Counted from the first letter of the stretch, positions 1,067 through 58,349 are shown. The stretch: 64,000 nucleotides of DNA from Eukaryota sp. TZLM1-RC (GCA_040285825.1 JAUPSS010000001.1:806001-870000), one strand, 5' to 3'. Program-made: numbers and translations. Notes: generated from the sequence alone by a model not told the origin.

Positions 1067-1893
1067 ATATATATATATATATTATCACCATTATCTTTTT
1101 CATTTTTCTTAATTTCTTCTTTTAATTCACTATTCAACAGACCCAACTCATCTAATGCACTTGATAATTCATTATTTTTACTGTTAATTAAGGTGATTTC
1201 ATCTTTTAACTCAGTAATGATTGAGTTTAACTGTTCCTTTTCCAGAATTAATTCCTTTTCACTCTCCGAGTTACTACTAATTTTTGCTTTAATTTGATCC
1301 AATTCAAGTTCTCTTTCGGATATAACACTACCTAATTTTTTTCTTTTTCTAGCACAACCAAGTTATAATTTGTTTCTAATCTAACCAACGAGTCAGTTTT
1401 TGAGCTGACAAGTTTTTCTGACATTCTGAATATTTCGAAGTGATCTCTTCTAACTGAGACTTAAAATTTTTAACACTGTTCCTCAGTCAAGGTTAAATTT
1501 GACCGAAGCTCTTGAATTTGATCGGAAATGTCTTGATTTTGAGCTTCCAAGTCTTGTTTTTCTTCACTAACTTTGTTGAAATTTCGTTGTAATTTTTCAT
1601 AAAGTTTTGATAATTCCTGATTTTTGACCGTCATGTCATTTAATTGATTGGTAACGTCAGCAATTTTGACCTTATCAGATTCTACTTTGGCTTTCAAATG
1701 ATTAATCTCTTCCTTTAAAAAAATCCAACTTGTCGTTGATTGAGCTCCTTTGATTCAAGCGCAAAGTTTTTAAAATTTTGTTCCAAAATTTCGTAATCTG
1801 ACTTGACTCTGCAAGACTTTGGGTTAATTCTTCACATTTCTGTTCGAATTCAGCAGACTTCCGTTGAAAACCTTTCAACTTGTCAATTTGAGA

Positions 1894-2250: not shown

Positions 2251-2670
2251 TATATATATATATATATTTTATCACCATTATCTTTTTCATTTTACTTAAT
2301 TTCTTCTTTTAATTCACTATTCAACAGACCCAACTCATCTAATGCACTTGATAATTCATTATTTTTACTGTTAATTAAGGTGATTTCATCTTTTAACTCA
2401 GTAATGATTGAGTTTAACTGTTCCTTTTCCAGAATTAATTCCTTTTCACTCTCCGAGTTACTACTAATTTTTGCTTTAATTTGATCCAATTCAAGTTCTC
2501 TTTCGGATATAACACTACCTAATTTTTCTTTTTCTAGCACAACCAAGTTATAATTTGTTTCTAATCTAACCAACGAGTCAGTTTTGAGCTGACAAGTTTT
2601 CTGACATTCTGAATATTTCGAAGTGATCTCTTCTAACTGAGACTTAAAATTTTCACACTGTTCCTCAGTC

Positions 2671-13097: not shown

Positions 13098-13481
13098 ATG
13101 GTCAGTTCAAATGATACAACTCACTTTGAATGCTCAATTTGTATGGAAGTCTTGCACGATGCTGTTGAAATTTCTTGCTGTAATACACTTTTTTGCAACG
13201 AATGTGCAAAGGTAGATTCCTGTCCTTCGTGCCGTAGTTCTGCCTTTAAACTCAACCCATGTCTCCCAATTAGACGAATCATAGGAAATCTTTCAGTTAC
13301 TTGCTGTATGTGTGACTATGCCACCACTAGAAGTGAGTATGCTGCCCATTACAGACAGTGTCCGTCACGAGTTAAACGATGTAATTTGTGTGATGCTTTT
13401 GTCCCAATCACTGAGTCTGAACTAATTCAGCATGCAGTGGAACATCATTCTCAGGATGTAGTTAATAAATTTTTTTCGTAG
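13098..13481 (+). CDS. Small RING finger + TRAF/SIAH-type zinc finger protein (putative E3 ligase)
   Basis: CSICMEVLHDAVEISCCNTLFCNECAKVDSCPSCR, then C..C......HYRQCP...CNLC...H...H. Followed by AATAAA. Confidence 0.8.
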   Translation: MVSSNDTTHFECSICMEVLHDAVEISCCNTLFCNECAKVDSCPSCRSSAFKLNPCLPIRRIIGNLSVTCCMCDYATTRSEYAAHYRQCPSRVKRCNLCDAFVPITESELIQHAVEHHSQDVVNKFFS

Positions 13482-17700: not shown

Positions 17701-18817
17701 ATTAGACAAGGTCTTAAAAGCGGTAACAAAAACTTTTCAATTTTAAAAGCGATGGGAGAAACTTCATCTTCAGTTTCGGGGCAGTATAAGCTCAAGTCAA
17801 GGGGATTGGCCATGGACCTATAGAGGCAAAATATGGCTAAAATGGGGAAACTGAAGTGAAAAAGGAAAGAGTTGGATGTGCAAGACACTCCGAAAAATTC
17901 GTAAAATTCTGGCCATGAAGAATGGAGATCAGGATAGAGATCACATAAAGAAGACAACAAAATTTTGGAAACAACCCCAAACACTAACCCCAACAGAACC
18001 AACCAAACAAGTTTTTTCCGATGTCTCCAATGATGAGAACTAAGAAAGCCTAAACAGGAAGCTCCTAGAATAATAGAAAAAGGATCTCTTATAGATAGAA
18101 TAGATACCCAAGCAAACACTACTGCCACTGTATGCATGAAAGCTGGGCCAAGTAGTTGGAATTGCGATGTAAATAAAGCAATCACAGGCGACGTGATTGA
18201 TGGGGAAGGTGATTTGATGAAGGAGGTAGAAATGATTAATTGAATAACCAAAGGTAATAAAAATTAAAGCATGCTCTAGACAAAAAAACAGAGTCACAAT
18301 GGTTGAGTGAGGGTAATGCAAATATTTTAAATATGGGACTTTTAATAAAATCTTGAGGCAATGCTATTGATAAATAAGTAATTGTTAATCGAGTTATTGT
18401 TAAAATTGAGCTTATTAGATAAAGCAGCTTCCTACTAGTTCCGTTTGTGTGTTTGATTAGAGTTAAATCAAAAATACAAATTATTAACGGTATTAGATTT
18501 AAAATATATGGTTGGAATGTTGAAATTACTAGAATGAAAACGACTAAATTTTTGATAATTGAAGGTCTTGAAAGGGAAATGAAGCGCTGATTAAAGTCAA
18601 TTCCCTTAAGAAAAACAAAAGATAATATTGGAAAAATAAGAAAAACAAATCGATCAAATAAAAGGTCAAAATGATAACGTGAGATCACGTCAACATAATG
18701 AGCTGGGAGAAGTGTGGATAAATAATCCATTACTGGGGTGTATTGGATTATAAATAAACTAGCAATGACCAAAACCAAACTGGAAAATCCGATAAAGTCA
18801 ATTAAAGAATTTCCAGA
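14701..18817 (-). pseudogene. PIEZO: Piezo mechanosensitive channel, 5'-truncated and frameshifted copy
   Basis: PFLYEMKCLLDW (PFxxE-x6-W signature), GLYLSIVIGVGRFVR, LPNVDKLLEICEDLFLAR...IYRDPDTLIELT, and many TM segments. Split into four ORFs and cut at 18817. Confidence 0.9.
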
Positions 18818-19335
18818 GCCTCACTTCCACAAAGCACAAGATCACTTTGTTTGGGGATAGAAGAGTTGTTCTGGTCAGCACAGAGGATGAATGTGTTCTA
18901 AAAAGAGGTACGATTTTTAATTGTAGAATTAAAGGGAAAAATAGAGAAATTACATTAGTTTTGGTTGAGGAATTCAATCCTGCTCTTGCGTATCCTGTTT
19001 GTTTTGCCGAAGAAAAGGCCCATGTTGATTTGGCTCTGCATTACTATGGAAATTTAGTCGACTATTTGCAGACTATTTGACCACGTTGAGCTGGAAGTAT
19101 GTGAACATGGGGTAAGTTGTGAAGGTCTTAAGGATCCTCTTCATCGCTTCACTTTTTCCCATGAACCTATACCAGTGATTCCTTATAAGTGCAAGTTTGG
19201 CGACAAGTGTGATAGGAAAAACGACCCTTCTTGTTATAGAAAATATGGGCATTGGAATGTCAACCAAGATCCTGAATTTGTCAAGAAATCTTTTTTGAAG
19301 AAAATTGTCAAAAGTTGTCTCATTCTTGACTTATA
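18818..19335 (+). pseudogene. Internally deleted fragment of the PARG/PBZ gene (catalytic domain removed)
   Basis: Matches the reverse complement of about 44700-44940 joined to about 43127-43395. Confidence 0.85.
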
Positions 19336-30741: not shown

Positions 30742-33700
30742 ATGGTTAAGCCCGTACTTCCGTCACTTCTACTACCTGCTACCTTGTTCGTTTGTCTTTT
30801 ATCTAGACAATCTTATTTCTTATTTGCTTTTGTTCCTTCGCTTTTTCTTGCTATTAAGCTTCCGAATCAGAAATAGCCCCCGCTGCTCTCTTTTGCATTA
30901 TCCTTTCTTGGTTTAGTCGCTTCTGCAGTAATCATTCCATTTGACCTCCCCCTTCTTCAGTCTTTATATATAGGTACTTGTTCTGATTCACTATGTATAC
31001 CACCATTTGCGTACTATGGTTCACTTGTTTTCTTGTTATTCATCTATCTTCGACTGCAACCTTCTTCATGCACGCTCTCCTCACATGTCCCTCTCCTGTC
31101 CAATGTTTTATCTCAAAACCATTCTCATCCTACTTTCCTTCTCTTTCGTCCCCACACCCACCTACTTCGTCTTCTTCACCCTCATATCGCTTGTTTTGTC
31201 ATCTCCAACTTCTCCTCTCCTCTCCCACAACCTCTACCATAAGATCTTCTCCATTTGTTCATTTTCCCACCTCTACTACATTCTTCTCTCCTCTACTCTC
31301 TCCCTTCCTTACTTTCATGATCCATCTACTCTTCTTCCACTTCCTGTGTCTTTCTTCTCCACACTACACATTCTTACCCTAATTCTCTCCATTTATCTTC
31401 ACTCATCCCCTTACTTTTTCTCTCCACATCACCGTATTCCCCAAGCAGATAGTGTTGAACCTAGTCTAATCTCTCTTTCTTTTGTTCCTGACACAACTGC
31501 TTCTATTAGTGTAGCATCTGTAATTTCTTTTTTCTCATGTGGATTAGTATTAATTGCTACCTTCTTTTACCCTTCACCTTGGCTGATTCCGTTGCTGATA
31601 TATGGAATGATTCTGATTATTTTTAAATTAAGAACTTGTGGTTTTAAACGAGGTTATAGAGTTTTATTGTTTTCTATTATTTCAATTAATTTAACATTTA
31701 TTTCTTTTTCTAAACAACCAAGACGTGACCAAGATGTGACGTTGACGTATCTACTGATCAGAAACTTGATGAAGAGGTCACACCAGATCAAGATGACACG
31801 TCTGAGCCTCAACCATCATTTTTACTTCGAATGGCAACCAAACTTCAGTCAATCATTTTGAACTTCTTCAATATCAACATTTCTGACCTACCACCACGTC
31901 ATCAAACGTCACCATTACGTTGGTTAAAGCACAATATCTATAGATACTCTTCTGTATTGTCTTGCTTGCTGTGCTATCTCGCTGCTTTGTGGTTTCCTTC
32001 AATTCCCACCGTGATGATTGCTTTCACCACGATCACTTTTGGTTTAATGTCCAAATATGGAGGCAAAGCTAGGTTTTGGCAGTTTATTTTGGGAATTTAT
32101 CTATCTTTATTATTAATCCATTACATTTTCACCTTTCCTTTCTTTTGTTTTTGTGTTTCGCCATCAGATTCAATTACCATTTCCCTTGGTAAGTCATGTC
32201 TAGATCCCACCAAGTGTCCTGTTCCAAGGGAGCTTATCGATCCATCAAGTCACCCCTCAGCCCTAAGTTCGCAACTCATTTACCTTGTTGGTATTGCTCC
32301 TATAGGCAGCTTCCTCTTCTCCTACCCTCCCTTGCTGATTGCTGCATTGGGTATCGTTCTTCATCGTTCTATCTCGTTTAGAATGGGCAGGTGGGGAATT
32401 GATGTAGAGGAGAGAGTTGGGGTTCGTCATGTTTGGGGTAGGGTCGTGGTCTTCTTCAAGACTCTAATGGAGAAGCGTTTCGACGCTATTGGAGTAGACC
32501 TCTACCCATTTATGTTTTTTATTGATATACTTCAGTTAATTGCGCTTCCATTTGCCTTTTTTAGTAGCTCAACAGCTTCCCAGTCGGTAATCCAATCAGT
32601 CCAGCTCAGTTATTTACCTGGTTTCCTTGCAATTTGGTTGATTGTTCAGTTTCTGTTAATCATTATTGATAGAACTCTTTTCTATTTGAGATTCGCAAGA
32701 CTCAAAGCTCTGGTTCATTTTATTTCTAATTTCACTGTGTTAATTGTTTTTTGTTTAATTTTCCCCCGCAGTAATCACGAATTACCAATTAATGCACCTT
32801 TTCTCCTAGTCGCGGCCTTTCTGCGGTTTGTGGCTGCCGTGTTGAGCTCTCTACAACTTCGTTTTGGTTTTCCACCGCCTTCCTCCAAAGCCTTTTTGAT
32901 GAAGTCTTACGGTTCTTTTAACAATTATGGATACCAAGCCTTTAGAGTCATTCCTTTTCTTTATGAAATGAAATGTTTGCTGGATTGGTCTTTGACTACT
33001 ACTGCTTTGGAATTTAATTACTGGATGCGAATAGAAGATATTTATTCATCGTTGTTTTTAATCAAATGCAGAAGGTTATCTACAGCGAAAAGAGGTCGAA
33101 ATTTTGGTGACCCACAACCAAAATTTGACAAATTTTCGCAAGGTTTTCTTTTGTTTTTCGGTCTTACGCTCTTATTATGTTTGCCCTTAATTTTATTTAG
33201 TTCTGCTAACCCAGTCTCCAAACCAAACCCTATCCAACAGGCCAGTATTGATGTAAGTTTCAATAACTACTTGCCCATTTTCTCTCAGCATGAAGTGCAC
33301 AAAGTCGATGTTATCCCGGCTACACAATACAATGCAATTGTTAGCCATCACTCCTTGCTCCGCGATTCTAACCGTGCAGATGTACGAAAGATTACCTTTT
33401 TCACTTCATCTGATTCTGTGTGGACCATTGCTCCTCCTGCCATGAACGGGCTAGTAGAAGCTTTGGAGGATGGAAGGGGAATAGTATCTGTTACTTTGTC
33501 GTTTAACAGACACTATCCAAGCGATAGGAGGACAGCAAAGGGATGGTACTCGTTCAATTTAGATCATGAACATTGCTTAGAGTTGGCCAAGTTATTTTCT
33601 GGTGATTTAGAAGAAGTAACAATACCTTTACTTCCAAGAGCTGCATTAATTCCTCTGGCCGAATCACCAATCTTTTCTGATCAACGGGAGGATACCCTCA

Positions 33701-35299: not shown

Positions 35300-35683
35300 C
35301 TACGAAAAAAATTTATTAACTACATCCTTAGAATGATGTTCCACTGCATGCTGAATTAATTCAGACTCAGGGATTGGGACAAAAGCATCACACAAATTAC
35401 ATCGTTTAACTCGTGACGGACACTGTCTGTAATGGGCAGCATACTCACATCTAGTGGTGGCATAGTCACACATACAGCAAGTAACTGAAAGATTTCCTAT
35501 GATTCGTCTAATTGGGAGACATGGGTTGAGTTTAAAGGCAGAACTACGGCACGAAGGACAGGAATCTACCTTTGCACATTCGTTGCAAAAAAGTGTATTA
35601 CAACAAGAAATTTCAACAGCATCGTGCAAGACTTCCATACAAATTGAGCATTCAAAGTGAGTTGTATCATTTGAACTGAACAT
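35300..35683 (-). CDS. Small RING + zinc finger protein, copy 2
   Basis: Near-identical to 13098..13481. Confidence 0.8.
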   Translation of the reverse strand: MFSSNDTTHFECSICMEVLHDAVEISCCNTLFCNECAKVDSCPSCRSSAFKLNPCLPIRRIIGNLSVTCCMCDYATTRCEYAAHYRQCPSRVKRCNLCDAFVPIPESELIQHAVEHHSKDVVNKFFS

Positions 35684-36731: not shown

Positions 36732-39605
36732 ATGCTCTCGTGTCCACATTGTTCAATGGATTTCAACGAAGAGTCTCGTGTGCCACTGGTAGTTTGCAGT
36801 CAGCGCCATAGTGTATGCGGTGTATGTTCTGATGCTGTGGAATCCTGTCCGATCTGCAATGAAGATATCCTGCCGTCACCGGAAGTCAACCTCAGTTTGC
36901 GCGATATAGCCAAAGCTTCTTGCAAGGAGGACCTCTGTGTACACATTCCCTCTAACCAGGTCAAACTTTTGCACATGATTGGACAAGGAGGATATGCACA
37001 GGTGTTTGCCGCTTCTTGGTTTGATTCAGACGTCGCCGCCAAGACTGTTGCTCTCACAGAAGAAGGTAAGAAACGACTGAGGAAAGAGATTGGTATTATG
37101 GCCAAGATTGATCATCCCTTTATCCTCCGCGTTTTTGGTCTGGTCAGCTTAATGGACAGACTCGCCATAATTATGGAACTTGCTGAAGGTTCTCTGTCAG
37201 TGCCGTCAAGATTGACTAAACAAAGTCTCTTGTTTGCCAAGAAGATCTGCCAGGCAGTCCGTTTCCTGCACTCCAAATCACTTGCACATGGAGATCTCAA
37301 GCCCGAAAACATTCTTTTTGTCAATGGGCAAATCAAATTAGCCGATTTTGGAACATCCAGGACTGTTGCCAAGACTTCCACGGCTACCAATCTATCATGT
37401 ACAGCACGGTATGCAGCCTTGGAACAGTTTGAGAACAAATTGTCTCTTGCCTCAGACATCTATGCAATTGGAATCATCCTTTGTGAGTTACTTTGTAATT
37501 ATAGGCCATTTGTCAATATGGATCAGATTGCCATAATGGGAGCTAAGTATTTTAAGACACCATTTGCTTTGGGTGAACACGTTCCCAGTGTGCTCAAAGA
37601 ATTAATCGCCCAATGTTGCTCTTCAGATCCAGCTGCCAGACCAAGTATTGCTCAAGTTCTTGTAGTTTTGGATCAATTGGATGACTTTGCTGAAGAAGGT
37701 GATGAAAATCCTGTTAGTATTAATAATGATGTTCAAACGCAACTGCAATCTGCCAACTCTACAATCGAGTCTCTACGAAAGAATGTTACTGATTTGGAGG
37801 CTTCCAGTCAACAACTCACCAACGATTTGACAGAACGGGATTCCAGAATTGCCCGGTTGGAAGAAGAAAGGGCCGGTATCAATGCCTCCAATCAACACCT
37901 CAGTCAATCTTTGGAAGAACGTGATGCTAGAATTGCCACTATGGAAGAAGCTTTAAATGCCAGCAAGGCCGGTATTGCCGAGAAAGATACAGAAAATGCC
38001 AACCTTAGATCTACCATTGATGAATTGGAAAAGCAAAATACTCTACTCAGTAGAACTAATTCTGATTTAGCAAGCAAAATTGCTGACCTTGAAGCGTTGT
38101 TGAGAGAGTGCCATTGTAATCAATCTTTGAACAATATCGATGATCATCATCCTCCATCTAAGGAAGAAATTTTGGAAGACATCAAGTCGAATGTAAATTG
38201 GAATGGATTGGGTGATGGAGTGAAGAAGGGTGTTGAGGACTTGGTTGATGGTTCCATCACTAAATTGGATCTTCAGTTCAACAACATTACCTCTGAAGGC
38301 GCTAGTGCTCTCGCCCGTGCTCTGGAGAGCAATTCCTCTCTGACTTTATTGAATCTTGAGTGCAACAACATTACCGATGAAGGCGCTAGTGCTCTCGCCC
38401 GTGCTCTGGAGAGAAATTCCACTCTGACTACATTGGTTCTTTGGAACAACAACATTACCTCTGAAGGCGCTAGTGCTCTCACCCGTGCCCTGGAGAGCAA
38501 TTCCACTCTGACTACATTGCATCTTTGGGAAAACAACATTGCCTCTGAAGGCGCTAGTGCTCTCGCCCGTGCTCTGGAGAGCAATTCCACTCTGACTAAA
38601 TTGGGTCTTCAGTACAACAACATTACCGATGAAGGCGCTAGTGCACTCGCCCGTGCTATGGAGAGAAATTCCACTCTGACTGAATTGAATCTTGTGAACA
38701 ACAACATTACCTCTGAAGGCGCTAGTGCTCTCGCCCGTGCTCTGGAGAGCAATTCCACTCTGACTAAATTGACTCTTGGGTACAACAAAATTACCGATGA
38801 AGGCGCTAGTGCTCTGGTGAACAACTCCTCTTTGACTACTTTGTATCTTAACTCCAACAACATCACCTCTGAAGGCGCTAGTGCTCTCGCCCGTGCTCTG
38901 GAGAGCAATTCCACTCTGACTGCATTGGATCTTAACTCCAACAACATTACCTCTGAAGGCGCTAGTGCTCTCGCCCGTGCTCTGGAGAGCAATTCCACTC
39001 TGACTGAATTGGATCTTCGGTGCAACAAAATTACCTCTGAAGGCGCTAGTGCTCTCGCCCGTGCCCTGGAGAGCAATTCCACTCTGACTACATTGCATCT
39101 TTGGGAAAACAACATTGCCTCTGAAGGCGCTAGTGCTCTCGCCCGTGCTCTGGAGAGCAATTCCACTCTGACTAAATTGGGTCTTCAGCAGAACAACATT
39201 ACCGATGAAGGCGCTAGTGCTCTCGCCCGTGCTCTGGAGAGCAATTCCACTCTGACTAAATTGGGTCTTGTGAACAACAACATTACCTCTGAAGGCGCTA
39301 GTGCACTCGCCCGTGCTATGGAGAGAAATTCCACTCTGACTGAATTGACTCTTGGGTACAACAAAATTACCGATGAAGGCGCTAGTGCTCTCGCCCGTGC
39401 TCTGGTGAACAACTCCTCTTTGACTACTTTGTATCTTAACTCCAACAACATCACCTCTGAAGGCGCTAGTGCTCTCGCCCATGCTCTGGAGAGCAATTCC
39501 ACTCTGACTGAATTGAATCTTGGGTACAACAAAATTAGCAATTCAACCAAATCCAAACTTCGACAAGTAGCATCTAATCGTCCTTCTCTCCGAATTTTCG
39601 TTTAA
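36732..39605 (+). CDS. RING-like zinc finger, TKL-like kinase (non-RD, HGD), coiled coil, 16 RI-like LRRs
   Basis: Intact 957-aa ORF with the same motifs as 9837..12047. AATAAA follows the stop. Confidence 0.93.
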   Translation: MLSCPHCSMDFNEESRVPLVVCSQRHSVCGVCSDAVESCPICNEDILPSPEVNLSLRDIAKASCKEDLCVHIPSNQVKLLHMIGQGGYAQVFAASWFDSDVAAKTVALTEEGKKRLRKEIGIMAKIDHPFILRVFGLVSLMDRLAIIMELAEGSLSVPSRLTKQSLLFAKKICQAVRFLHSKSLAHGDLKPENILFVNGQIKLADFGTSRTVAKTSTATNLSCTARYAALEQFENKLSLASDIYAIGIILCELLCNYRPFVNMDQIAIMGAKYFKTPFALGEHVPSVLKELIAQCCSSDPAARPSIAQVLVVLDQLDDFAEEGDENPVSINNDVQTQLQSANSTIESLRKNVTDLEASSQQLTNDLTERDSRIARLEEERAGINASNQHLSQSLEERDARIATMEEALNASKAGIAEKDTENANLRSTIDELEKQNTLLSRTNSDLASKIADLEALLRECHCNQSLNNIDDHHPPSKEEILEDIKSNVNWNGLGDGVKKGVEDLVDGSITKLDLQFNNITSEGASALARALESNSSLTLLNLECNNITDEGASALARALERNSTLTTLVLWNNNITSEGASALTRALESNSTLTTLHLWENNIASEGASALARALESNSTLTKLGLQYNNITDEGASALARAMERNSTLTELNLVNNNITSEGASALARALESNSTLTKLTLGYNKITDEGASALVNNSSLTTLYLNSNNITSEGASALARALESNSTLTALDLNSNNITSEGASALARALESNSTLTELDLRCNKITSEGASALARALESNSTLTTLHLWENNIASEGASALARALESNSTLTKLGLQQNNITDEGASALARALESNSTLTKLGLVNNNITSEGASALARAMERNSTLTELTLGYNKITDEGASALARALVNNSSLTTLYLNSNNITSEGASALAHALESNSTLTELNLGYNKISNSTKSKLRQVASNRPSLRIFV
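38250..39542 (+). repeat. 84-bp coding tandem repeat (LRR array, 16 units, one with a 12-bp in-frame deletion)
   Basis: Read directly. Unit 7 lacks ARAL near 38810. Confidence 0.95.
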
Positions 39606-43126: not shown

Positions 43127-46100
43127 TTATAAGTCAAGTTTGAGACAACTTTTGACAATTTTCTTCAAAATAGATTTCTTGACAAATTCAGGATCTTGGT
43201 TGACATTCCAATGCCCATATTTTCTATAACAAGAAGGGTCGTTTTTCCTATCACACTTGTCGCCAAACTTGCACTTATAAGGAATCACTGGTATAGGTTC
43301 ATGGGAAAAAGTGAAGCGATGGAGAGCATCCTTAAGACCTTCGCAACTTACCCCATGTTCACATACTTCCAGCTCAACGTGGTCAAATAGTCTGCAGTGT
43401 TCCTCGTTTTCCACATCTTTACAAAATCCTGAATATCGACATATATGTTTAAACCCCCTTAAATGCTTGGCTCCCTCGGAGGTCTTTCCCATATGATCCA
43501 CATAGTAATACTCGCAGGTATAAGGATTAGGACATTGGGGTAGTTCAGAGTTTATATTAGGAGCACTTTTAGTAATAGAGGAAGATCTTGGTTTTTGAAA
43601 CGATTTTGTGGATGTAAAATGTTGAAAAAATGTTCGATGGGATAGTGAAGCCAACTGGTTACAATTTTTAAAGGGGCAACGTGGAACATGGTGAAATTTT
43701 GAAATATGATCTCTTTCATCAACACGTTGACAGGGAAAGAGCAAATCATGACATGGAAGCATAAAATTTCGAGAATTTTGAATTAAATCGTATTTAATTA
43801 AATCTTGGCATTGTGCTAGACAATCCCCAAATCCACTCAATATAATTGAATCAAAAAACTTGTGGAAAATGGAAAGTACAAATGATAAAACAGTCATTGC
43901 ACCAGGAATAGGGTTTTTGAAAGCTCCACAACCAAGAGGGCAAATCACTAAATGAGTAATTATGTGTTTAATGGCAGCTAAAAAGACACAAGTCCATCTC
44001 TTGTATAGTAATTGCAAATCATCAAAATGAGCATAGTCTTCACCAAAGTTTTCAACTTCCTTTTTTTGTGGATTTTGAGGAGCAGCAGTACTTGTAATGG
44101 TAACTCTTTGTGGTGTTTCAAGCAATTGACATCCAGTAGCTTCCGTTGTTTTCAAAATTTCCACATTTTCGGTAACTACAACATCAATTTTAGCTGTTTT
44201 CCATGGATATGTTACCCTTTGGCCAGAAACTACCTGTCCACCATACTGTTCAGGATCCAAAGCAGCACCTAGAGTTGTTCTTCTGAAAAGTGATTCTTCT
44301 TGAGCACTGGCACCCGTGAGATAACCACCACCAGGATGTTCCTCATTAGCCATGTTGAGGACACCAACACGGTTAGTGGTAGGATCAAGGCCAATCGCAC
44401 ATTCAAGACAGTCTTTTTCCAAAAACTCGATCGGTTTAACATCATTAGTTGCAACAAAATCAAAATCATGATTAAAAAAATCGTCAAAAAAATGGACAGA
44501 ATTACATAGCAAATTACAATTCAATCTAGTAAAGGATTCACCATTCAGAGCATTACCATTGGCATTCACGACTCTCAAAGCATGAGCTAATATGATGCAC
44601 AACACAAGCCTATAACAGTTGTTGAATCTTCGTCTAAGAGAGGGAAGGTCATAGGAATTGATTAGGAAATGGATTAATTGATCATTGTAATTTTCGACTA
44701 AATTTCCATAGTAATGCAGAGCCAAATCAACATGGGCCTTTTCTTCGGCAAAAGAAACAGGATACGCAAGAGCAGGATTGAATTCCTCAACCAAAACTAA
44801 TGTAATTTCTCTATTTTTCCCTTTAATTCTACAATTAAAAATCGTACCTCTTTTTAGAACACATTCATCCTCTGTGCTGACCAGAACAACTCTTCTATCC
44901 CCAAACAAAGTGATCTTGTGCTTTGTGGAAGTGAGGCTCTGGTCAATGACGTGTTTCAGAGTTGAGAAATTTGGACAAGGAATGAAGACTAGTTCGAATA
45001 AATAGAATTCATTAAAAGAAATTCTAAAATTTTGGTTGGAAGTGTCAATTGATTGAATGATCTCTGATTGATCTTCTTTTGAAAAGACCAAATATTCGAA
45101 CAATGAAATGTCAGCCAATATTTGGTCATTTAGATAGATTGTCTGTGAATTCGGTAATAGTTGAGCCAAATTTTCGTCAATAACAGAATGATTAATTGGT
45201 GATCCATCTTCGACAACGACTGTGATCGACGTCAAGGCTAAAATTTTAGAAGTTTGATCTCTTCCCCTGCTCTTGAGCTCTACTATTTCCTTTTGCTTAT
45301 CCATTAATTTTTGTTTCAATTTTTGAATCAATTGATTGTTTTTTTCATTATTATTGACCGCCAACTGATCACTGTTAGTGGACACTTCTGAAATTTCTGC
45401 CTTTAAACCCAAAACTTCCTTTTCCAAATTTTCAATGATTTCCGATCGGTCGACTACACAATTTTTCAAAGAGTCAATGATAGCAACAAATTCTTCATTA
45501 ATTTCTTTAATTTTCCCATATTGCCCTTCTAATTCATCATGAGAGTCAGAAAGATCCTTGAAAGCTGATTTTGATTGGTTCAAGGAAACAGAAAGTGATT
45601 TAATAACTGATGAATAATTGGTAGATTTTTCGGAGAGATCACAAAAAAGATCATAAAGCTCATTGAAAGAAGTTGAAAATGTTTTGAATTCTGAACGTTG
45701 TGACTGAATGGTTTCCTCTAACTGAGTAATTTTTGACTCCAATTCAACAATTAACGTAGACTTAAATTGAATTTCTGTATTCAATTCAGCAATCAAGTCT
45801 TGATTATTCTTGATTGATTGACAATTTGATTGATTCTCGGTTGATAATTCCGAATTACTGGCTTTAAGTGACATAATCTCTGATTCCAGTGATTCTTTTT
45901 CAGACGTTAGAGATTTGATTTGAGTAGTTAATTCAGCAATTGATGAATTTAATTCTGCAAATTTAGAACTTTTCATCAATAATTCTTGATTCTTTGAATT
46001 AATTTCAGCATCTTTTTCTTTTAATAATTCAATTTTATCACCATTATCTTTTTCATTTTTCTTAATTTCTTCTTTTAATTCACTATTCAACAGACCCAAC

Positions 46101-46339
46101 TCATCTAATGCACTTGATAATTCATTATTTTTACTGTTAATTAAGGTGATTTCATCTTTTAACTCAGTAATGATTGAGTTTAACTGTTCCTTTTCCAGAA
46201 TTAATTCCTTTTCACTCTCCGAGTTACTACTAATTTTTGCTTTAATTTGATCCAATTCAAGTTCTCTTTCGGATATAACACTACCTAATTTTTCTTTTTC
46301 TAGCACAACCAAGTAATAATTTGTTTCTAATCTAACCAA
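43127..46339 (-). CDS. Coiled coil, microbial-type PARG (DUF2263-like macrodomain), six PBZ-like zinc fingers; 5' end truncated or uncertain
   Basis: VLNMANEEHPGGGYLTGASAQEESLFRRTTL (GGG-x7-QEE catalytic loop), AAP, LGCGAFKNP, and C-x5-C-x7-H-x5-H repeats. The frame continues upstream past a TAA at 46418 to 46843, where a retroelement tail cuts it. Confidence 0.8.
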   Translation of the reverse strand: MVRLETNYYLVVLEKEKLGSVISERELELDQIKAKISSNSESEKELILEKEQLNSIITELKDEITLINSKNNELSSALDELGLLNSELKEEIKKNEKDNGDKIELLKEKDAEINSKNQELLMKSSKFAELNSSIAELTTQIKSLTSEKESLESEIMSLKASNSELSTENQSNCQSIKNNQDLIAELNTEIQFKSTLIVELESKITQLEETIQSQRSEFKTFSTSFNELYDLFCDLSEKSTNYSSVIKSLSVSLNQSKSAFKDLSDSHDELEGQYGKIKEINEEFVAIIDSLKNCVVDRSEIIENLEKEVLGLKAEISEVSTNSDQLAVNNNEKNNQLIQKLKQKLMDKQKEIVELKSRGRDQTSKILALTSITVVVEDGSPINHSVIDENLAQLLPNSQTIYLNDQILADISLFEYLVFSKEDQSEIIQSIDTSNQNFRISFNEFYLFELVFIPCPNFSTLKHVIDQSLTSTKHKITLFGDRRVVLVSTEDECVLKRGTIFNCRIKGKNREITLVLVEEFNPALAYPVSFAEEKAHVDLALHYYGNLVENYNDQLIHFLINSYDLPSLRRRFNNCYRLVLCIILAHALRVVNANGNALNGESFTRLNCNLLCNSVHFFDDFFNHDFDFVATNDVKPIEFLEKDCLECAIGLDPTTNRVGVLNMANEEHPGGGYLTGASAQEESLFRRTTLGAALDPEQYGGQVVSGQRVTYPWKTAKIDVVVTENVEILKTTEATGCQLLETPQRVTITSTAAPQNPQKKEVENFGEDYAHFDDLQLLYKRWTCVFLAAIKHIITHLVICPLGCGAFKNPIPGAMTVLSFVLSIFHKFFDSIILSGFGDCLAQCQDLIKYDLIQNSRNFMLPCHDLLFPCQRVDERDHISKFHHVPRCPFKNCNQLASLSHRTFFQHFTSTKSFQKPRSSSITKSAPNINSELPQCPNPYTCEYYYVDHMGKTSEGAKHLRGFKHICRYSGFCKDVENEEHCRLFDHVELEVCEHGVSCEGLKDALHRFTFSHEPIPVIPYKCKFGDKCDRKNDPSCYRKYGHWNVNQDPEFVKKSILKKIVKSCLKLDL

Positions 46340-49044: not shown

Positions 49045-52000
49045 ATGGTTAAGCCCGTACTTTCGTCACTTCTACTACCTGCTACCTTGTTCGTTTGTCT
49101 TTTATCTAGACAATCTTATTTCTTATTTGCTTTTGTTCCTTCGCTTTTTCTTGCTATTAAGCTTCCGAATCAGAAATAGCCCCCGCTGCTCTCTTTTGCA
49201 TTATCCTTTCTTGGTTTAGTCGCTTCTGCAGTAATCATTCCATTTGACCTCCCCCTTCTTCAGTCTTTATATATAGGTACTTGTTCTGATTCACTATGTA
49301 TACCACCATTTGCGTACTATGGTTCACTTGTTTTCTTGTTATTCATCTATCTTCGACTGCAACCTTCTTCATGCACGCTCTCCTCACATGTCCCTCTCCT
49401 GTCCAATGTTTTATCTCAAAACCATTCTCATCCTACTTTCCTTCTCTTTCGTCCCCACACCCACCTACTTCGTCTTCTTCACCCTCATATCGCTTGTTTT
49501 GTCATCTCCAACTTCTCCTCTCCTCTCCCACAACCTCTACCATAAGATCTTCTCCATTTGTTCATTTTCCCACCTCTACTACATTCTTCTCTCCTCTACT
49601 CTCTCCCTTCCTTACTTTCATGATCCATCTACTCTTCTTCCACTTCCTGTGTCTTTCTTCTCCACACTACACATTCTTACCCTAATTCTCTCCATTTATC
49701 TTCACTCATCCCCTTACTTTTTCTCTCCACATCACCGTATTCCCCAAGCAGATAGTGTTGAACCTAGTCTAATCTCTCTTTCTTTTGTTCCTGACACAAC
49801 TGCTTCTATTAGTGTAGCATCTGTAATTTCTTTTTTCTCATGTGGATTAGTATTAATTGCTACCTTCTTTTACCCTTCACCTTGGCTGATTCCGTTGCTG
49901 ATATATGGAATGATTCTGATTATTTTTAAATTAAGAACTTGTGGTTTTAAACCAGGTTATAGAGTTTTATTATTTTCTATTATTTCAATTAATTTAACAT
50001 TTATTTCTTTTTCTAAACAACCAAGAGCTGTGACGTTACTTTCAGCAGCTTTCTTTCTATTTTTGAACCCTTTTGGTCTATTGGTGACGTTTTCGCCACG
50101 TCAGCATAGGTACTTTTTGAAATTTTTGAGAATTATTTACACAATTGACCACTCTATTATTGTTTTTACTGCTTCTTTATTAATCACCTTAAATTTACCT
50201 ACAGTTCCATTTATTTTACTATTCTTATTATCAGTTCATTATATTCTTCATCCTTTATCATCAAATAAAAAAATTACAAATTTGGTGTTATTTATTTCTT
50301 TTGGTTTTGTTTTACTATTTTATTCCACTTTCTCTTCCTTTATTTCCTCAATCTGTGATTCTCAATTCGCAATTGTGTTGGGCGTTTGTCAGACCCAATC
50401 TTATTATTATTCAGTTATTATCTTTATTTTTAATTTCTTCTTTATCTCATTTAAATTATTTACTAAGAAGAATAGATGGTGAAAGTAGAACCTCTTTGTC
50501 TTTTCAATCTCCTTTATTCTTAAAATTCAAATCAGTAATTGGAGTTTGCTTTATCAGCATATACTTGTTATTTAGAGTTTGTTTATTGGAAATTGTTATA
50601 TTAGCAATCTTTGTGGTTATTGTTTTACTCCCAATTGTTGGAATTCGAAATTCTTTAATTGACTTTATCGGATTTTCCAGTTTGGTTTTGGTCATTGCTA
50701 GTTTATTTATAATCCAATACACCCCAGTAATGGATTATTTATCCACACTTCTCCCAGCTCATTATGTTGACGTGATATCACGTTATCATTTTGACCTTTT
50801 ATTTGATTGATTTGTTTTTCTTATTTTTCCAGTATTATCTTTTGTTTTTCTTAAGGGAATTGACTTTAATCAGCGCTTCATTTCCCTTTCAAGACCTTCA
50901 ATTATCAAAAATTTAGTCGTTTTCATTCTAGTAATTTCAACATTCCAACCATATATTTTAAATCTAATACCGTTAATAATTTGTATTTTTGATTTAACTC
51001 TAATCAAACACACAAACGGAACTAGTAGGAAGCTGCTTTATCTAATAACCTCAATTTTAACAATAACTCGATTAACAATTACTTATTTATCAATAGCATT
51101 GCCTCAAGATTTTATTAAAAGTCCCATATTTAAAATATTTGCATTACCCTCACTCAACCATTGTGACTCTGTTTTTGTCTAGAGCATGCTTTAATTTTAT
51201 TACCTTTGGTTATTCAATTAATCATTTCTACCTCCTTCATCAAATCACCTTCCCCATCAATCACGTCACCTGTGATTGCTTTATTTACATCGCAATTCCA
51301 ACTACTTGGCCCAGCTTTCATGCATACAGTGGCAGTAGTGTTTGCTTGGGTATCTATTCTATCTATAAGAGATCCTTTTTCTATTATTCTAGGAGCTTCC
51401 TGTTTAGGCTTTCTTAGTTCTCATCATTGGAGACATCGGAAAAAACTTGTTTGGTTGGTTCTGTTGGGGTTAGTGTTTGGGGTTGTTTCCAAAATTTTGT
51501 TGTCTTCTTTATGTGATCTCTATCCTGATCTCCATTCTTCATGGCCAAAAATTTACGAATTTTTCGGAGTGTCTTGCACATCCAACTCTTTCCTTTTTCA
51601 CTTCAGTTTCCCCATTTTAGCCATATTTTGCCTCTATAGGTCCATGGCCAATCCCCTTGACTTGAGCTTATACTGCCCCGAAACTGAAGATGAAGTTTCT
51701 CCCATCGCTTTTAAAATTGAAAAGTTTTTGTTACCGCTTTTAAGACCTTGTCTAATTATTTTATTGTTCTTTATCGGTGTTCAACGTGCATCTGTTCCTG
51801 CTTTGCTTTACGTAATTGTAGCACTTTGGTTGGTATATTCGGACTCTGTTTTTACTGAGCTGAAAAGGGCAAAAACTTTCACGTTTTGTTTGTATATTTT
51901 AAACTGCTCTGTTTTGATTTCACAATCAATATTTCAGTTGAGCTTTTTCAGTGAATCTTCTGATCTCTTCTCGATCTCTTCTATTCTAGGTCTAGATCAA

Positions 52001-54756
52001 TACCATTCTTACTACTCGGCGCTCAAATTATCAGCTTCACTTTTGGATTTCATTGTCCACGGCATCTCTTCTTCTTTGGATGTATTGGTTTACTCTGCTT
52101 CCTTTAAAAGATATCTTTCTTCAGTTAAAACCAGCAGAGATTTGGCCATCCAACGAGTCTTGGATGATGAAAAGTTAAGTAAGCTTAGGCGGGAAAGGAT
52201 TTTAAAGCAACAGTTAACAGAGAAGGAAGCTACTGAAAGCAGATTGGAAATGTTAAAGTCCAAAAGACTTGGTAAAAGAGATACATCAGCTCGTCAAATA
52301 TTTGAAGAAGAGATCAAAGCACATCAGGACGTTTTAAGTGACTTGTCAAGTAGTGCAGAAGAGATCAAAAAGGATCATGATGACCTGTCAGGTCAAGAGA
52401 AGTCAAGTGACGTTGACGTATCTACTGATCAGAAACTTGATGAAGAGGTCACACCCGATCAAGATGACACGTCTGAACCTCAACCATCATTTTTACTTCG
52501 AATGGCAACCAAACTTCAGTCAATCATTTTGAACTTCTTCAATATCAACATTTCTGACCTACCACCACGTCATCAAACGTCACCATTACGTTGGTTAAAG
52601 CACAATATCTATAGATACTCTTCTGTATTGTCTTGCTTGCTGTGCTATCTCGCTGCCTTGTGGTTTCCTTCAATTCCCACCGTGATGATTGCTTTCACCA
52701 CGATCACTTTTGGTTTAATGTCCAAATATGGAGGCAAAGCTAGGTTTTGGCAGTTTATTTTGGGAATTTATCTATCTTTATTATTAATCCACTACATTTT
52801 CACCTTTCCTTTCTTTTGTTTTTGCGTTTCGCCATCAGATTCAATTACCATTTCCTTTGGTAAGTCATGTCTAGATCCCACCAAGTGTCCTGTTCCAAGG
52901 GAGCTTATCGATCCATCCAGTCACCCCTCAGCCCTAAGTTCACAACTCATTTACCTTGTTGGTATTGCTCCTATTGGTAGCTTCCTCTTCTCCTACCCTC
53001 CCTTGCTGATTGCTGCATTGGGTATCGTTCTTCATCGTTCTATCTCGTTTAGAATGGGCAGGTGGGGAATTGATGTAGAGGAGAGAGTTGGGGTTCGTCA
53101 TGTTTGGGGAAGGGTCGTGGTCTTCTTCAAGACTCTAATGGAGAAGCGTTTCGACGCTATTGGAGTAGACCTCTACCCATTTATGTTTTTTATTGATATA
53201 CTTCAGCTAATTGCGCTTCCATTTGCCTTTTTTAGTAGCTCAACAGCTTCCCAGTCAGTAATCCAATCAGTCCAGCTCAGTTATTTACCTGGTTTCCTTG
53301 CAATTTGGTTGATTGTTCAGTTTCTGTTAATCATTATTGATAGAACTCTTTTCTATTTGAGATTCGCAAGACTCAAAGCTCTGGTTCATTTCATTTCTAA
53401 TTTCACTGTGTTAATTGTTTTTTGTTTAATTTTCCCCCGCAGTAATCACGAATTACCAATTAATGCACCTTTTCTCCTAGTCGCGGCATTTCTGCGGTTT
53501 GTGGCTGCCGTGTTGAGCTCTCTACAGCTTCGTTTTGGTTTTCCGCCACCTTCTTCCAAAGCCTTTTTGATGAAGTCTTACGGTTCTTTTAATAATTATG
53601 GATACCAAGCATTTAGAGTCATTCCTTTTCTTTATGAAATGAAATGTTTGTTGGATTGGTCTTTGACTACTACTGCATTGGAATTTAGTTACTGGATGCG
53701 AATAGAAGATATTTATTCATCGTTATTCTTAATCAAATGCAGAAGGTTATCTACAGCGAAAAGGGGTCGAAATTTTGGTTGTGGGTCGCCAAATTTGGTT
53801 GTGACAAATTTTCGCAAGGATTTCTTTTGTTTTTCGGTCTTACGCTATTATTATGTTTGCCTTTAATTTTATTTAGTTCTGCTAACCCAGTCTCCAAACC
53901 AAACCCTATCCAACAGGCCAGTATTGATGTAAGTTTCAATAACTACTTGCCCATTTTCTCTCAGCATGAAGTGCACAAAGTCGATGTTATCCCGGCTACA
54001 CAATACAATGCAATTGTTAGCCATCACTCCTTGCTCCGCGATTCTAACCGTGCAGATGTAAGAAAGATTACCTTTTTCACTTCATCTGATTCTGTGTGGA
54101 CCATTGCTCCTCCTGCCATGAACGGGCTAGTAGAAGCTTTGGAGGATGGAAGGGGAATAGTGTCTGTTACTTTGTCGTTTAACAGACACTATCCAAGCGA
54201 TAGGAGGACAGCAAAGGGATGGTACTCGTTCAATTTAGATCATGAACATTGTTTAGAGTTGGCCAAGTTATTTTCTGGTGATTTAGAAGAAGTAATAATA
54301 CCTTTACTTCCAAGAGCTGCATTAATTCCTCTGGCCGAATCACCAATCTTTTCTGATCAACGTGAGGATACTCTCATTCAGCGTAGAGAGCGTGACGGAC
54401 AGACTTATTGGTTGATCAAGGATGCTGATTCAAGAGAACCATTCTATATGTATACTTATAGTTTAGAATCGACCGCTGCACTTGGTGCTTATGCCAGCGG
54501 GGGTTTGATTGGATTGTATCTATCAATTGTGATTGGTGTTGGTAGGTTTGTTCGACTTTCATTTTCGGACAGCAAATCCCAAAATTTTGTTTCGGCTCTC
54601 CCAAATGTGGATAAATTACTTGAAATCTGTGAGGATTTGTTCCTGGCCAGGAGTATCTCAGATTTGGTGCTTGAAGAATCAATTTACAAGGAAATCATTC
54701 AGATATATAGAGATCCAGATACTTTGATTGAATTAACCACACCACCAGTTAAATAG
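49045..54756 (+). pseudogene. PIEZO: Full-span Piezo gene (about 1900 codons) with stops, frameshifts and a micro-inversion
   Basis: ATG 49045 MVKPVLSSLLLPATLFVCLLSR, TAG near 49177, TGA at 50808, several frameshifts, and a rearrangement at 53770-53805. Piezo signature and C-terminus present. Confidence 0.88.
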
Positions 54757-55972: not shown

Positions 55973-56380
55973 TTACATTGAACTATGAGGAAACATCTTC
56001 GAAAAAAATTTATTAACTACATCCTTAGAATGATGTTCCACTGCATGCTGAATTAATTCAGACTCAGGGATTGGGACAAAAGCATCACACAAATTACATC
56101 GTTTAACTCGTGACGGACACTGTCTGTAATGGGCAGCATACTCACTTCTAGTGGTGGCATAGTCACACATACAGCAAGTAACTGAAAGATTTCCTATGAT
56201 TCGTCTAATTGGGAGACATGGGTTGAGTTTAAAGGCAGAACTACGGCACGAAGGACAGGAATCTACCTTTGCACATTCGTTGCAAAAAAGTGTATTACAA
56301 CAAGAAATTTCAACAGCATCGTGCAAGACTTCCATACAAATTGAGCATTCAAAGTGAGTTGTATCATTTGAACTGAACAT
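55973..56380 (-). CDS. Small RING + zinc finger protein, copy 3 (stop lost, 8-aa extension)
   Basis: Near-identical to the other copies. TAG is changed to AAG. Confidence 0.78.
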   Translation of the reverse strand: MFSSNDTTHFECSICMEVLHDAVEISCCNTLFCNECAKVDSCPSCRSSAFKLNPCLPIRRIIGNLSVTCCMCDYATTRSEYAAHYRQCPSRVKRCNLCDAFVPIPESELIQHAVEHHSKDVVNKFFSKMFPHSSM

Positions 56381-57428: not shown

Positions 57429-58349
57429 ATGCTCTCGTGTCCACATTGTTCAATGGATTTCAACGAAGAGTCTCGTGTGCCACTGGTAGTTTGCAGTCAG
57501 CGCCATAGTGTATGCGGTGTATGCTCTGATGCTGTGGAATCCTGTCCGATATGCAATGAAGATATCCTGCCGTCACCGGAAGTCAACATCAGTTTGCGCG
57601 ATATAGCCAAAGCTTCTTGCAAGGAGGACCTCTGTGTACACATTCCCTCTAACCAGGTCAAACTTTTGCACATGATTGGTCAAGGAGGATATGCCCAGGT
57701 GTTTACTGCTTCTTGGTTTGATTCAGACGTCGCCGCCAAGACTGTTGCTCTCACAGAAGAAGGTAAGAAACGACTGAGGAAAGAGATTGGTATTATGGCC
57801 AAGATTGATCATCCCTTTATCCTCCGCGTTTTTGGTCTGGTCAGCTTAATGGACAGACTCGCCATAATTATGGAACTTGCTGAAGGATCTCTGCCAGTGC
57901 CGTCAAGATTGACTAAACAAAGTCTCTTGTTTGCAAAAAGGATCTGTCAGGCAGTCCGTTTTCTGCACTCCAAATCACTTGTGCATAGAGATCTCAAGCC
58001 CGAGAACATTCTTTTTGTCAATGGGCAAATCAAATTAGCCGATTTTGGAACATCCAGGACTGTTGCCAAGACTTCCACGGCTACCAATCTATCATGTACA
58101 GCACGGTATGCAGCCTTGGAACAGTTTGAGAACAAATTGTCTCTTGCCTCAGACATCTATGCAATTGGAATCATCCTTTGTGAGTTACTTTGTAATTATA
58201 GACCATTTGTCAATATGGATCAGATTGCCATAATGGGAGCTAAGTATTTTAAGACACCATTTGCTTTGGGTGAACACGTTCCCAGTGTGCTCAAAGAATT
58301 AATCGCCCAATGTTGCTCTTCAGATCCAGCTGCCAGACCAAGTGTTTGA
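57429..58349 (+). CDS. Truncated zinc finger-kinase copy (RD type, HRDLKPEN) with no coiled coil or LRR
   Basis: Homology to 36732.. ends at 58342, just after kinase subdomain XI (AARPS), and a stop follows at once. Confidence 0.7.
   Translation: MLSCPHCSMDFNEESRVPLVVCSQRHSVCGVCSDAVESCPICNEDILPSPEVNISLRDIAKASCKEDLCVHIPSNQVKLLHMIGQGGYAQVFTASWFDSDVAAKTVALTEEGKKRLRKEIGIMAKIDHPFILRVFGLVSLMDRLAIIMELAEGSLPVPSRLTKQSLLFAKRICQAVRFLHSKSLVHRDLKPENILFVNGQIKLADFGTSRTVAKTSTATNLSCTARYAALEQFENKLSLASDIYAIGIILCELLCNYRPFVNMDQIAIMGAKYFKTPFALGEHVPSVLKELIAQCCSSDPAARPSV

Follow-up and report, generated by a model that had tools for sequence, protein, structure and literature searches.

For animals, plants, fungi and, more recently, bacteria, there are good descriptions of candidate immune receptors; to our knowledge, very little has been written on such receptors in free-living heterotrophic protists. 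Among the closest described systems are the fungal NLRs, in which WD, ANK and tetratricopeptide (TPR) repeats, and no leucine-rich repeats (LRRs), combine high internal conservation with selected surface sites, polymorphism of repeat number and exchange between paralogues (Dyrka et al. 2014, PMC4986451). Here we analyse a stretch of 64,000 nucleotides (the window) from Eukaryota sp. TZLM1-RC (GCA_040285825.1 JAUPSS010000001.1:806001-870000), which is the type strain of Skoliomonas litria. This anaerobic flagellate (Metamonada) from a soda lake in Tanzania feeds on bacteria (PMC11603281). The gene under study, copy B (36732..39605), encodes a RING-like finger, a kinase, a coiled coil and an array of LRRs. 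We report that, in this gene and its paralogues, the x residues of the LRR string xLxLxx are driven apart by positive selection on amino-acid change, and that concerted evolution via unequal crossing-over and exchange between paralogues keeps the scaffold of the repeat near-identical at the DNA level.

The S. litria family resembles the fungal NLRs (STAND proteins, Podospora nwd/het-e) in having units that are ~85% or more identical, few selected surface sites, a variable number of repeats, exchange, and different heads on one kind of tail. With a scaffold distance between units of 0.033 at the nucleotide level, a ratio of nonsynonymous to synonymous differences (pN/pS) of 5.5 at the hypervariable codons, 4-15 units per gene and mosaic genes, it falls in the regime of internally conserved repeats under diversifying selection. 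The fungal proteins differ by their NACHT or NB-ARC NTPase and by the absence of LRRs, whereas the S. litria family has LRRs of the ribonuclease inhibitor (RI) type, no NTPase, a RING and kinase head, and a metamonad host. An initial annotation of the window, made from the sequence alone, had likened the family both to fungal NLRs and to the variable lymphocyte receptors (VLRs) of lampreys. The first comparison fits well; the second does not, as the members are complete germline open reading frames (ORFs).

A second likeness is to the LRR-ROC-COR (ROCO) proteins of brown algae, for which passages of Teng et al. 2024 (PMC11378527, citing Zambounis et al. 2012) describe near-identical LRR units outside plants and animals, with four selected concave sites per repeat, and shuffling. 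There, each 23-residue LRR is a 72-bp phase-2 exon, shuffled and alternatively spliced, ahead of a ROC-COR GTPase. In S. litria, by contrast, intronless 84-bp arrays stand at the C-terminus of a RING-kinase protein, and ROC and COR are absent from the Pfam matches. Tetrahymena is another protist with very young, tandemly clustered and fast-evolving LRR genes, protein kinase and TPR being among its other top expanding domains, according to the available passages of Xiong et al. 2019 (PMC6564038). Its LRRs are however 90-bp exons parted by introns, in thousands of genes of another architecture, and those passages do not map site-specific selection onto the concave face.

Plant LRR receptor kinases and the LRRs of plant NLRs share with the family an LRR sensor joined to a non-RD kinase, and diversifying selection on the solvent-exposed residues of xxLxLxx. 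In plants, the pattern-recognition receptor kinases (XA21, FLS2, EFR; PMC3411088) are marked by non-RD kinases that have G or C ahead of the catalytic Asp. These receptors have a signal peptide, an N-terminal extracellular domain of plant-specific 24-residue LRRs, a membrane helix and a C-terminal kinase, whereas in S. litria the kinase precedes the LRRs in what appears to be a soluble protein, with homogenised, RI-type units of 28 residues. TRIM proteins (e.g. TRIM5alpha) are multi-copy and line up a RING, a B-box, an antiparallel coiled coil and a fast-evolving C-terminal binder (SPRY). The S. litria proteins share with them a putative RING E3 head, a probably dimerising coiled coil, a rapidly evolving C-terminal recognition domain and the multi-copy family; they differ by having no B-box match, a kinase between RING and coiled coil, an LRR binder, and a coiled coil predicted to be parallel and in register. 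RI itself, and the LRRs of NLRP and NOD2 proteins, have the same 28-residue strand-helix units and horseshoe; RI lacks a signalling head and homogenised repeats. The LRR families that PMC11437800 discusses for Metamonada are BspA-like surface proteins. We found no comparable family for Metamonada in the literature searched, and no description there of the RING/non-RD kinase/coiled coil/RI-LRR architecture. The evolutionary regime is already known from fungal NLRs, brown-alga LRR-ROCOs and Tetrahymena LRRs. New are the architecture, the metamonad lineage, the intronless arrays, the very clean third-base signature and the tail common to unrelated heads.

Near-identical heads and different repeat arrays

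The two full-length copies of the gene in the window, and their arrays, are as follows.

36732..39605, plus strand: copy B, uninterrupted intronless ORF of 957 aa (RING-like finger, non-RD kinase, coiled coil, 16 LRRs)
9837..12047, minus strand: copy A (= P0003), uninterrupted intronless ORF of 736 aa, architecture as copy B with 8 LRRs
38259..39506, plus strand: LRR array of copy B, 15 units of 84 bp (unit 7 lacks 4 codons)
39507..39605, plus strand: terminal half-unit, conserved C-terminal cap and stop codon of copy B
9933..10520, minus strand: LRR array of copy A, 7 full 84-bp units

Tandem Repeats Finder detected 84-bp arrays of 7.3 copies in A and 15.4 copies in B. Parsed by hand, A consists of 7 full 28-residue units and a terminal half-unit, and B of 15 and a terminal half-unit, in keeping with the 8 and 16 LRRs first counted. 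Each unit reads T-x-L-x-L-x-x-N-x-I-T-x, followed by a scaffold of 16 almost invariant residues, and its hypervariable codons are numbers 2, 4, 6 and 7. The near-invariance of the scaffold, also part of the initial annotation, is borne out at the DNA level: a 39-nt scaffold pattern was found 21 times at 3 mismatches or fewer, compared to 0 in 100 shuffles, and within the window it is confined to the A and B genes. The xLxLxx strings listed for the two copies were correct, and indeed none is common to A and B. Over the whole set of 88 units analysed below, 70 distinct four-residue words were counted, just 4 of which are common to more than one gene. The heads of A and B differ by 3 residues up to residue 312 (I68L, K143R, L311V), which agrees with the estimate of about three over the zinc finger and kinase; another 24 differences lie within residues 328-518.

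Copies A and B belong to a young, locally clustered S. litria family. In the public collection, the proteins nearest to them carry the name 'hypothetical protein' and belong to Eukaryota sp. TZLM1-RC, where they are all encoded on one 4.04-Mb contig (GCA_040285825.1). At least 12 intact LRR-bearing members were found, A and B included: 9 with the main head (P0266 among them) and 3 with an unrelated head (P0008-P0010). P0011 is a more distant member, with ordinary degenerate LRRs. The nine paralogues that were fetched lie at 0.65-1.30 Mb of the contig (~650 kb) and are all intronless. The number of full LRR units per gene ranges from 4 to 15.

Positive selection at four codons of each unit

To measure selection, 88 full units from 11 genes were pooled, and pN and pS were computed by the Nei-Gojobori method. 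Both the pairwise and the spanning-tree counts given here are descriptive, and do not come from a phylogenetic site model. The units fall into three classes of positions.

Codons 2, 4, 6 and 7: entropy 2.1-3.2 bits, pN 0.50, pS 0.09
Positions 9 and 12: entropy 1.1 bits, pN 0.24, pS 0.03
22 scaffold positions: entropy at most 0.83 bits, pN 0.032, pS 0.042

The initial annotation had staked its claim on the four sites evolving faster than the scaffold, and they do: pN/pS inside the four codons was 5.5 (3.9-8.6), and their pN relative to the pS of the scaffold was ~12 (bootstrap interval 9.1-18.3; ~19 after Jukes-Cantor correction), compared to a pN/pS of 0.78 inside the scaffold. In the nine genes outside that annotation (67 units), the ratio of hypervariable pN to scaffold pS was 15.4. 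As sites named on two genes replicate in nine others, the signal is not a by-product of picking the most variable columns. The minimum spanning tree of the units gives the same picture, since 163 of its 306 changes (53%) fell on 12 of the 84 nucleotides (14%), and of these 160 were nonsynonymous and 3 synonymous. On the 66 scaffold nucleotides, 103 changes were counted, 76 nonsynonymous and 27 synonymous.

The third base of the four codons is fixed in a manner that depends on the site: at codon 2 it is A (86/88 units), at codon 4 T (86/88), at codon 6 G (74/88) and at codon 7 C (80/88), so that glycine is spelled GGA, GGT, GGG or GGC according to the site. Diversity (pi) in these codons amounts to 0.23-0.72 at positions 1-2, compared to 0.05-0.28 at position 3. 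Codon bias as the cause of the fixed third bases is ruled out, because one amino acid uses a different codon at each site, and neutral evolution of surface sites is ruled out by the far greater diversity of codon positions 1-2 relative to position 3.

Could such patterns arise with no selection, from repeat instability combined with assembly or polishing errors, or from neutral drift at unconstrained surface sites? The S. litria assembly is a 41x Nanopore assembly polished with Illumina reads, published together with poly-A RNA-seq (PMC11316075), and short reads cannot be uniquely placed in 84-bp repeats. Moreover, the scaffold pN/pS is close to 1. Four runs were found, all in the form of Logan contigs and none recorded as RNA; their pieces on the gene, from DNA runs, measure 52-1213 bp, and the longest listed differ from the window by 13 and 7 letters, possibly because they stem from other family members; no array-spanning piece is among the short contigs listed, which counts neither way. 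Yet errors or drift would strike all codon positions and all 84 bases alike, contrary to the concentration of change just described, to the excess of nonsynonymous changes in the four codons (160/163) and to the conservation of their third base. In addition, the eleven ORFs analysed (641-957 codons) contain neither stop nor frameshift, and the heads are under purifying selection (pN/pS: RING 0.13, kinase 0.20, coiled coil 0.50). We therefore hold an origin without selection to be very improbable.

The restriction of change to codon positions 1-2, with a fixed third base, also recalls the NNC/NNT pattern of diversity-generating retroelements (DGRs), and it might be that a programmed process writes the variable codons, either by DGR-like templated mutagenesis or by VLR-like somatic assembly of cassettes. 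DGR mutagenesis is adenine-specific. In the present units, however, codon 2 retains its third-position A in 86 of 88 cases, and the other adenines (those of the AAC, ATT, ACC, GAA, AGT, GAG, AGC and AAT codons) are essentially invariant, which rules out adenine mutagenesis of the DGR type. No template repeat was seen either, the scaffold pattern occurring only inside the A and B genes of the window. As for VLR-like assembly, it works on incomplete genes flanked by cassettes, and here the germline ORFs are complete. We give programmed diversification next to no credence. With bias, drift or error, and DGRs excluded, what is left is either a recent single ancestor of the units or their continual homogenisation, together with selection for replacement at the four sites.

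One homogenised tail for two unrelated heads

Traces of repeat turnover are visible inside both arrays. In copy A, unit 3 is identical to unit 4, and unit 5 nearly so to unit 6. In copy B, a block of five units was duplicated (units 4-8 compared to 11-15), and the later divergence of the two blocks lies mostly at the variable sites. Along the heads, the nearest paralogue shifts from one segment to the next: for instance, B is closest to A at codons 151-300, and to the gene of L003 at codons 351-500, while L001 and L004 have a divergent block in common over codons 201-300. This means that the genes are recombinant mosaics.

The three members with an unrelated head (P0008-P0010; loci L007, L008 and L009, genes at 3001..end) form a second subfamily. 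They have a canonical Pfam RING, followed by a divergent kinase domain with HRD, no glycine loop and DFD in place of DFG, which is possibly a pseudokinase. Their heads are 20-30% identical to the main heads, and identity rises to 85-100% ~80 residues ahead of the first LRR. The nucleotide distance between LRR scaffolds is 0.033 within genes, 0.034 between genes and 0.035 between subfamilies. From the jump in identity and the equal scaffold distances, we conclude that one homogenised tail, comprising the last part of the coiled coil, the linker, the array and the C-terminal cap, is common to two unrelated heads. As the arrays are intronless, reshuffling must act by unequal crossing-over and conversion. 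The proposal that specificity is reshuffled faster than the rest of the cassette can be judged fair, given the duplications of units and blocks, the mosaics and the selection at four sites.

Domains of copy B and structural models

Ahead of the array, copy B contains the following domains.

36732..36866, plus strand: N-terminal zinc finger, aa 1-45, C3HC4 spacing C-x2-C-x14-C-x3-H-x2-C-x2-C-x6-C-x2-C
36963..37667, plus strand: protein kinase domain, aa 78-312, with Gly loop, VAAK, HGDLKPEN, DFG and ALE
37719..38123, plus strand: coiled coil, aa 330-464 (135 residues), a single long helix in the model of copy A
38124..38258, plus strand: linker and N-terminal LRR cap, aa 465-509, part of the tail module common to the second subfamily

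The ligand spacing of the finger fits a C3HC4 RING exactly. Its Pfam matches fall short of the cut-off (zf-RING_5 17.9 bits, Sina_RING 17.8 bits), and those of relatives' fingers are borderline (Sina_RING 25.9-28.9 bits, for a cut-off of 29.3). In a family alignment of 32 sequences, ligands H26, C29, C32 and C39 are nearly invariant, and in copy A the equivalent residues were modelled with a predicted local distance difference test score (pLDDT) of 77-87. The finger is probably an E3 ligase module of the RING type. For the kinase, Pfam Pkinase was matched at residues 79-310 (E=1e-44), and every catalytic motif was found: GQGGYA, VAAK, HGDLKPEN (non-RD), DFG and ALE. HGD is present in A, in B and in the consensus of the alignment of 32 relatives (VHGDLKPxN, with H186 invariant and D188 nearly so), HRD occurring only in the second subfamily and in a truncated copy of the window, copy C. 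The closest solved kinases are TAK1 (7e-26), then B-Raf. By its best hits, and without a tree, the domain is assigned to the tyrosine kinase-like (TKL) group; judged from its motifs, this non-RD kinase is apparently active.

The full-length AlphaFold2 model of copy A (pLDDT 85.4) contains one helix at residues 334-457 and an LRR solenoid with a pLDDT of at least 95. Pairing of the coiled coil with itself was predicted to be parallel and in register over residues 330-464, with a score of 0.55, whereas the highest of 3 controls scored 0.00; at least 74% of the contacts agreed between runs, with a partner pLDDT of 79 or more. Of 30 proteins solved as pairs of one chain, 21 attain the mark used for self-pairing, and of 23 solved as single chains none does (for eukaryotes, 17 of 29 pairs and 0 of 30 single chains). 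The models thus suggest that the coiled coil probably forms a parallel dimer.

Pfam LRR_6 gave 6 significant stretches in A and 15 in B (E=7e-98 for the 15-stretch match). Folded alone, the LRR domain of copy B (pLDDT 81.5) matched ribonuclease inhibitor in the PDB with a template modelling (TM) score of 0.74-0.82, then the LRRs of NLRPs, sequence identity to ribonuclease inhibitor and to NLRP/NOD2 LRRs being just 20-28%. The modelled strands cover unit positions 2-6 (2-4 in a second model), and a helix of 13 residues covers positions 12-24, the hypervariable residues being located on the beta strand or next to it. In the LxxLxLxxN geometry, the x residues point to the concave side, in alternation with the leucines of the core. 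From this geometry and the modelled strands, we infer that the hypervariable side chains line the concave face.

In the protein sequence, neither a signal peptide nor a membrane segment was found, the most hydrophobic 19-mer being a core helix of the kinase. There was no NTPase family among the Pfam or NCBIfam matches, and it is the coiled coil that sits between head and repeats. The architecture first proposed, zinc finger-kinase-coiled coil-LRR, is thus upheld by the ligand spacing, the Pkinase and LRR_6 matches and the modelled helix, with a finger that stays sub-threshold in Pfam. The RI-like nature of the LRRs is confirmed by LRR_6 and by the structural match, and the suggested intracellular location is consistent with the hydrophobicity of the sequence, which would place the protein in the cytosol.

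Wider use of the RING-kinase head

An exhaustive, profile-free search with the head (residues 1-320) returned dozens of clusters at 50% identity with an N-terminal RING and a kinase. Ten clusters were looked up, and belong to Skoliomonas strains RCL and GEM-RC and to Anaeramoeba. The C-termini carried by these related heads are TPR arrays, LRR_4, a TRAFD1/XAF1-type finger, TPR with a villin headpiece, or none recognised. A TPR array is joined to the same head in the following protein.

L010 2001..4451: P0012, Skoliomonas sp. TZLM3-RCL, RING-HGD kinase head followed by twelve 34-residue TPR units

The TPR units of P0012 share 82% nucleotide identity and show a block duplication, units 4 and 8, as well as 5 and 10, being identical in DNA. 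In P0013 (Skoliomonas sp. GEM-RC1), about seven near-identical Pro/Ser-rich repeats of ~54 residues come after the same head and coiled coil, as a further internally conserved tail. No LRR_6-bearing orthologue from the sister strains was present among the matches in the public protein collection, in a search limited by length and word filters, and the best matches of these strains have just the head in common, at 35-39% identity. Look-alikes in the ESM Atlas were just generic kinase-LRR_4, U-box-kinase and ZZ-kinase clusters. By sequence comparison, the head is a genus-wide modular signalling unit, and the homogenised RI-type LRR tail looks S. litria-specific and young.

Possible functions

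Judging from the selection signature and the architecture, we think it more probable than not that these proteins serve in non-self recognition, as cytosolic receptors or restriction factors. Each paralogue would display its own concave binding surface, and together the paralogues would form a germline-encoded repertoire of recognition proteins in the cytosol. A ligand bound on the paired LRR domains would alter the geometry or clustering of the paired heads, and the fused heads would then signal by phosphorylation and/or ubiquitination. Likely targets would be non-self: viruses, prey bacteria that escape digestion or are intracellular, and proteins of mobile elements. Such targets are plausible for a bacterivore whose genome is crowded by mobile elements.

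A different possibility is that the head family provides substrate-recruiting kinase/E3 scaffolds for endogenous, fast-diverging targets, for instance cytoskeletal or regulatory ones, the diversity of the arrays reflecting sub-functionalisation. An expansion of repeat-bearing kinases is known in another metamonad, with the NEK-ankyrin proteins of Giardia. The joining of a large head family to TPR, LRR_4, zinc finger and villin headpiece, in three Skoliomonas strains and Anaeramoeba, would suit such adaptors, and axonemal components with RI-type LRRs occur among the fold matches. However, an omega of ~10 exactly at the concave-face sites is not expected of housekeeping adaptors, nor are 70 words in 88 units and the lack of an LRR-bearing orthologue among the sister-strain matches listed. 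We regard adaptors for endogenous targets as unlikely.

The diversity could also encode identity, as in fungal het loci, and serve the recognition of self or conspecifics (mating, kin, cell-cell compatibility). A like signature of conserved repeats and selected surface sites is carried by the fungal het-d/het-e NLRs, which act in allorecognition (PMC4986451). In S. litria, however, soluble proteins with neither signal peptide nor membrane segment would need cytoplasmic mixing to meet their partner, and the descriptions of Skoliomonas (PMC11316075, PMC11603281) document neither cell fusion nor sex. Besides, at least 12 clustered paralogues in one clone suit a repertoire better than an identity locus. 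This makes recognition of self quite unlikely in our eyes.

Several points weigh against a role in non-self recognition, or soften the evidence for it. A positively selected binding face is likewise a mark of proteins for mating or allorecognition and of effectors. The units share a history of duplication and recombination; they are not independent samples, and the recombination violates tree-based assumptions. With a scaffold pN/pS of ~0.8, the sameness of the scaffold owes more to recency or homogenisation than to constraint. Some members could be on their way to decay, one copy being already truncated. The TPR array of P0012 gave no clean pattern of hypervariable sites, its changes being spread along the unit (15 synonymous, 45 nonsynonymous). 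The exact 957-aa protein of copy B is absent from the public protein collection, in which the 736-aa and 306-aa copies are present, so that public annotation seems to lack or mis-model the longest member. Finally, array lengths rest on the published assembly (Nanopore 41x, Illumina-polished; PMC11316075).

Genomic setting

Copies A and B occupy the two arms of an inverted segmental duplication, the arms being 95-99% identical over several kb. The other features of the window are listed below.

57429..58349, plus strand: copy C, truncated third copy of 306 aa, finger and kinase only
35300..35683, minus strand: small RING-finger ORF of 127 aa, head-to-head with copy B, ~1 kb upstream
13098..13481, plus strand: small RING-finger ORF, head-to-head with copy A, ~1 kb upstream
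55973..56380, minus strand: small RING-finger ORF of 135 aa, head-to-head with truncated copy C, ~1 kb upstream
43127..46339, minus strand: PARG-like ORF, intact, 1070 aa
26586..29794, minus strand: second PARG-like copy, 95% identical to the intact one, frameshifted near 27605-27614
17..204, 1078..1344, 2265..2573 and 18769..19333: N- and C-terminal PARG-like fragments
15661..18251 (minus strand), 31738..33156 (plus strand) and 51206..53866 (plus strand): three Piezo-like copies

Copy C is a direct copy. Its homology to A and B ends at 58346, and the sequence is then unique in the window up to ~60058; no LRR unit was found downstream of it in the window. Its catalytic loop reads HRD. As HGD is the family consensus, the RD state of copy C looks derived, and the copy is probably dead. 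Among the Piezo-like copies, the one at 51206..53866 has the longest ORF (886 aa), and the one at 15661..18251 is split over two frames. The contrast drawn initially, between intact receptor ORFs and decaying Piezo and PARG neighbours, holds broadly: A and B are intact and the PARG and Piezo copies are partly broken, but one PARG copy is intact and copy C is itself truncated.

The small Cys/His-rich ORF (127-135 aa) has a weak Pfam RING match and was also found beside one other paralogue (L003 1571..1951), but not at the other eight of the nine fetched loci. An obligatory partnership is therefore ruled out, the ORF being present only beside the three window copies and this one paralogue, and it can be considered as baggage of the duplicated cassette, not as a family feature. 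The long antisense ORFs of the arrays (38346..39482, minus strand, 378 aa, and 9943..10533, plus strand, 196 aa) were rejected as genes, as they are periodic by-products of the 84-bp repeat. Elsewhere on the contig, the called genes beside P0002 (L002 7834..8292) and P0004 (L003 7855..8247) match Pfam Lactamase_B/Anti-Pycsar_Apyc1, a name linked to phage defence, and the called gene beside P0006 (L005 1..1769) matches Pfam Gad2, a name linked to phage-defence biology.

Significance of the family

A near-consensus scaffold with defined variable positions resembles the designed libraries of repeat-protein binders, and by this resemblance the natural units could inform protein engineering. Beside fungal NLRs and brown-alga ROCOs, the family is a further independent case that supports near-identical repeats with few hypervariable surface sites as a general route to recognition diversity. 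It is also a natural case of a single homogenised sensor module moved between unrelated signalling heads.

In animals, RING E3 and TAK1-like kinase parts act downstream of separate receptors. Tentatively, and with less assurance than for non-self recognition itself, we propose that skoliomonads, and perhaps other free-living metamonads, may have independently invented a class of innate immune receptors in which a RING E3 and a TAK1-like non-RD kinase would be fused, via a parallel dimeric coiled coil, to interchangeable arrays (RI-type LRRs in S. litria, TPRs in strain RCL). In that case, the S. litria LRR array would amount to a germline repertoire with ~100 or more code-like units, diversified by selection at four residues per unit and redistributed among genes by recombination. 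For such biology, the S. litria family offers a concrete, testable candidate with an unusually clean selection signal, in which four sites of each unit change and the third base is kept.

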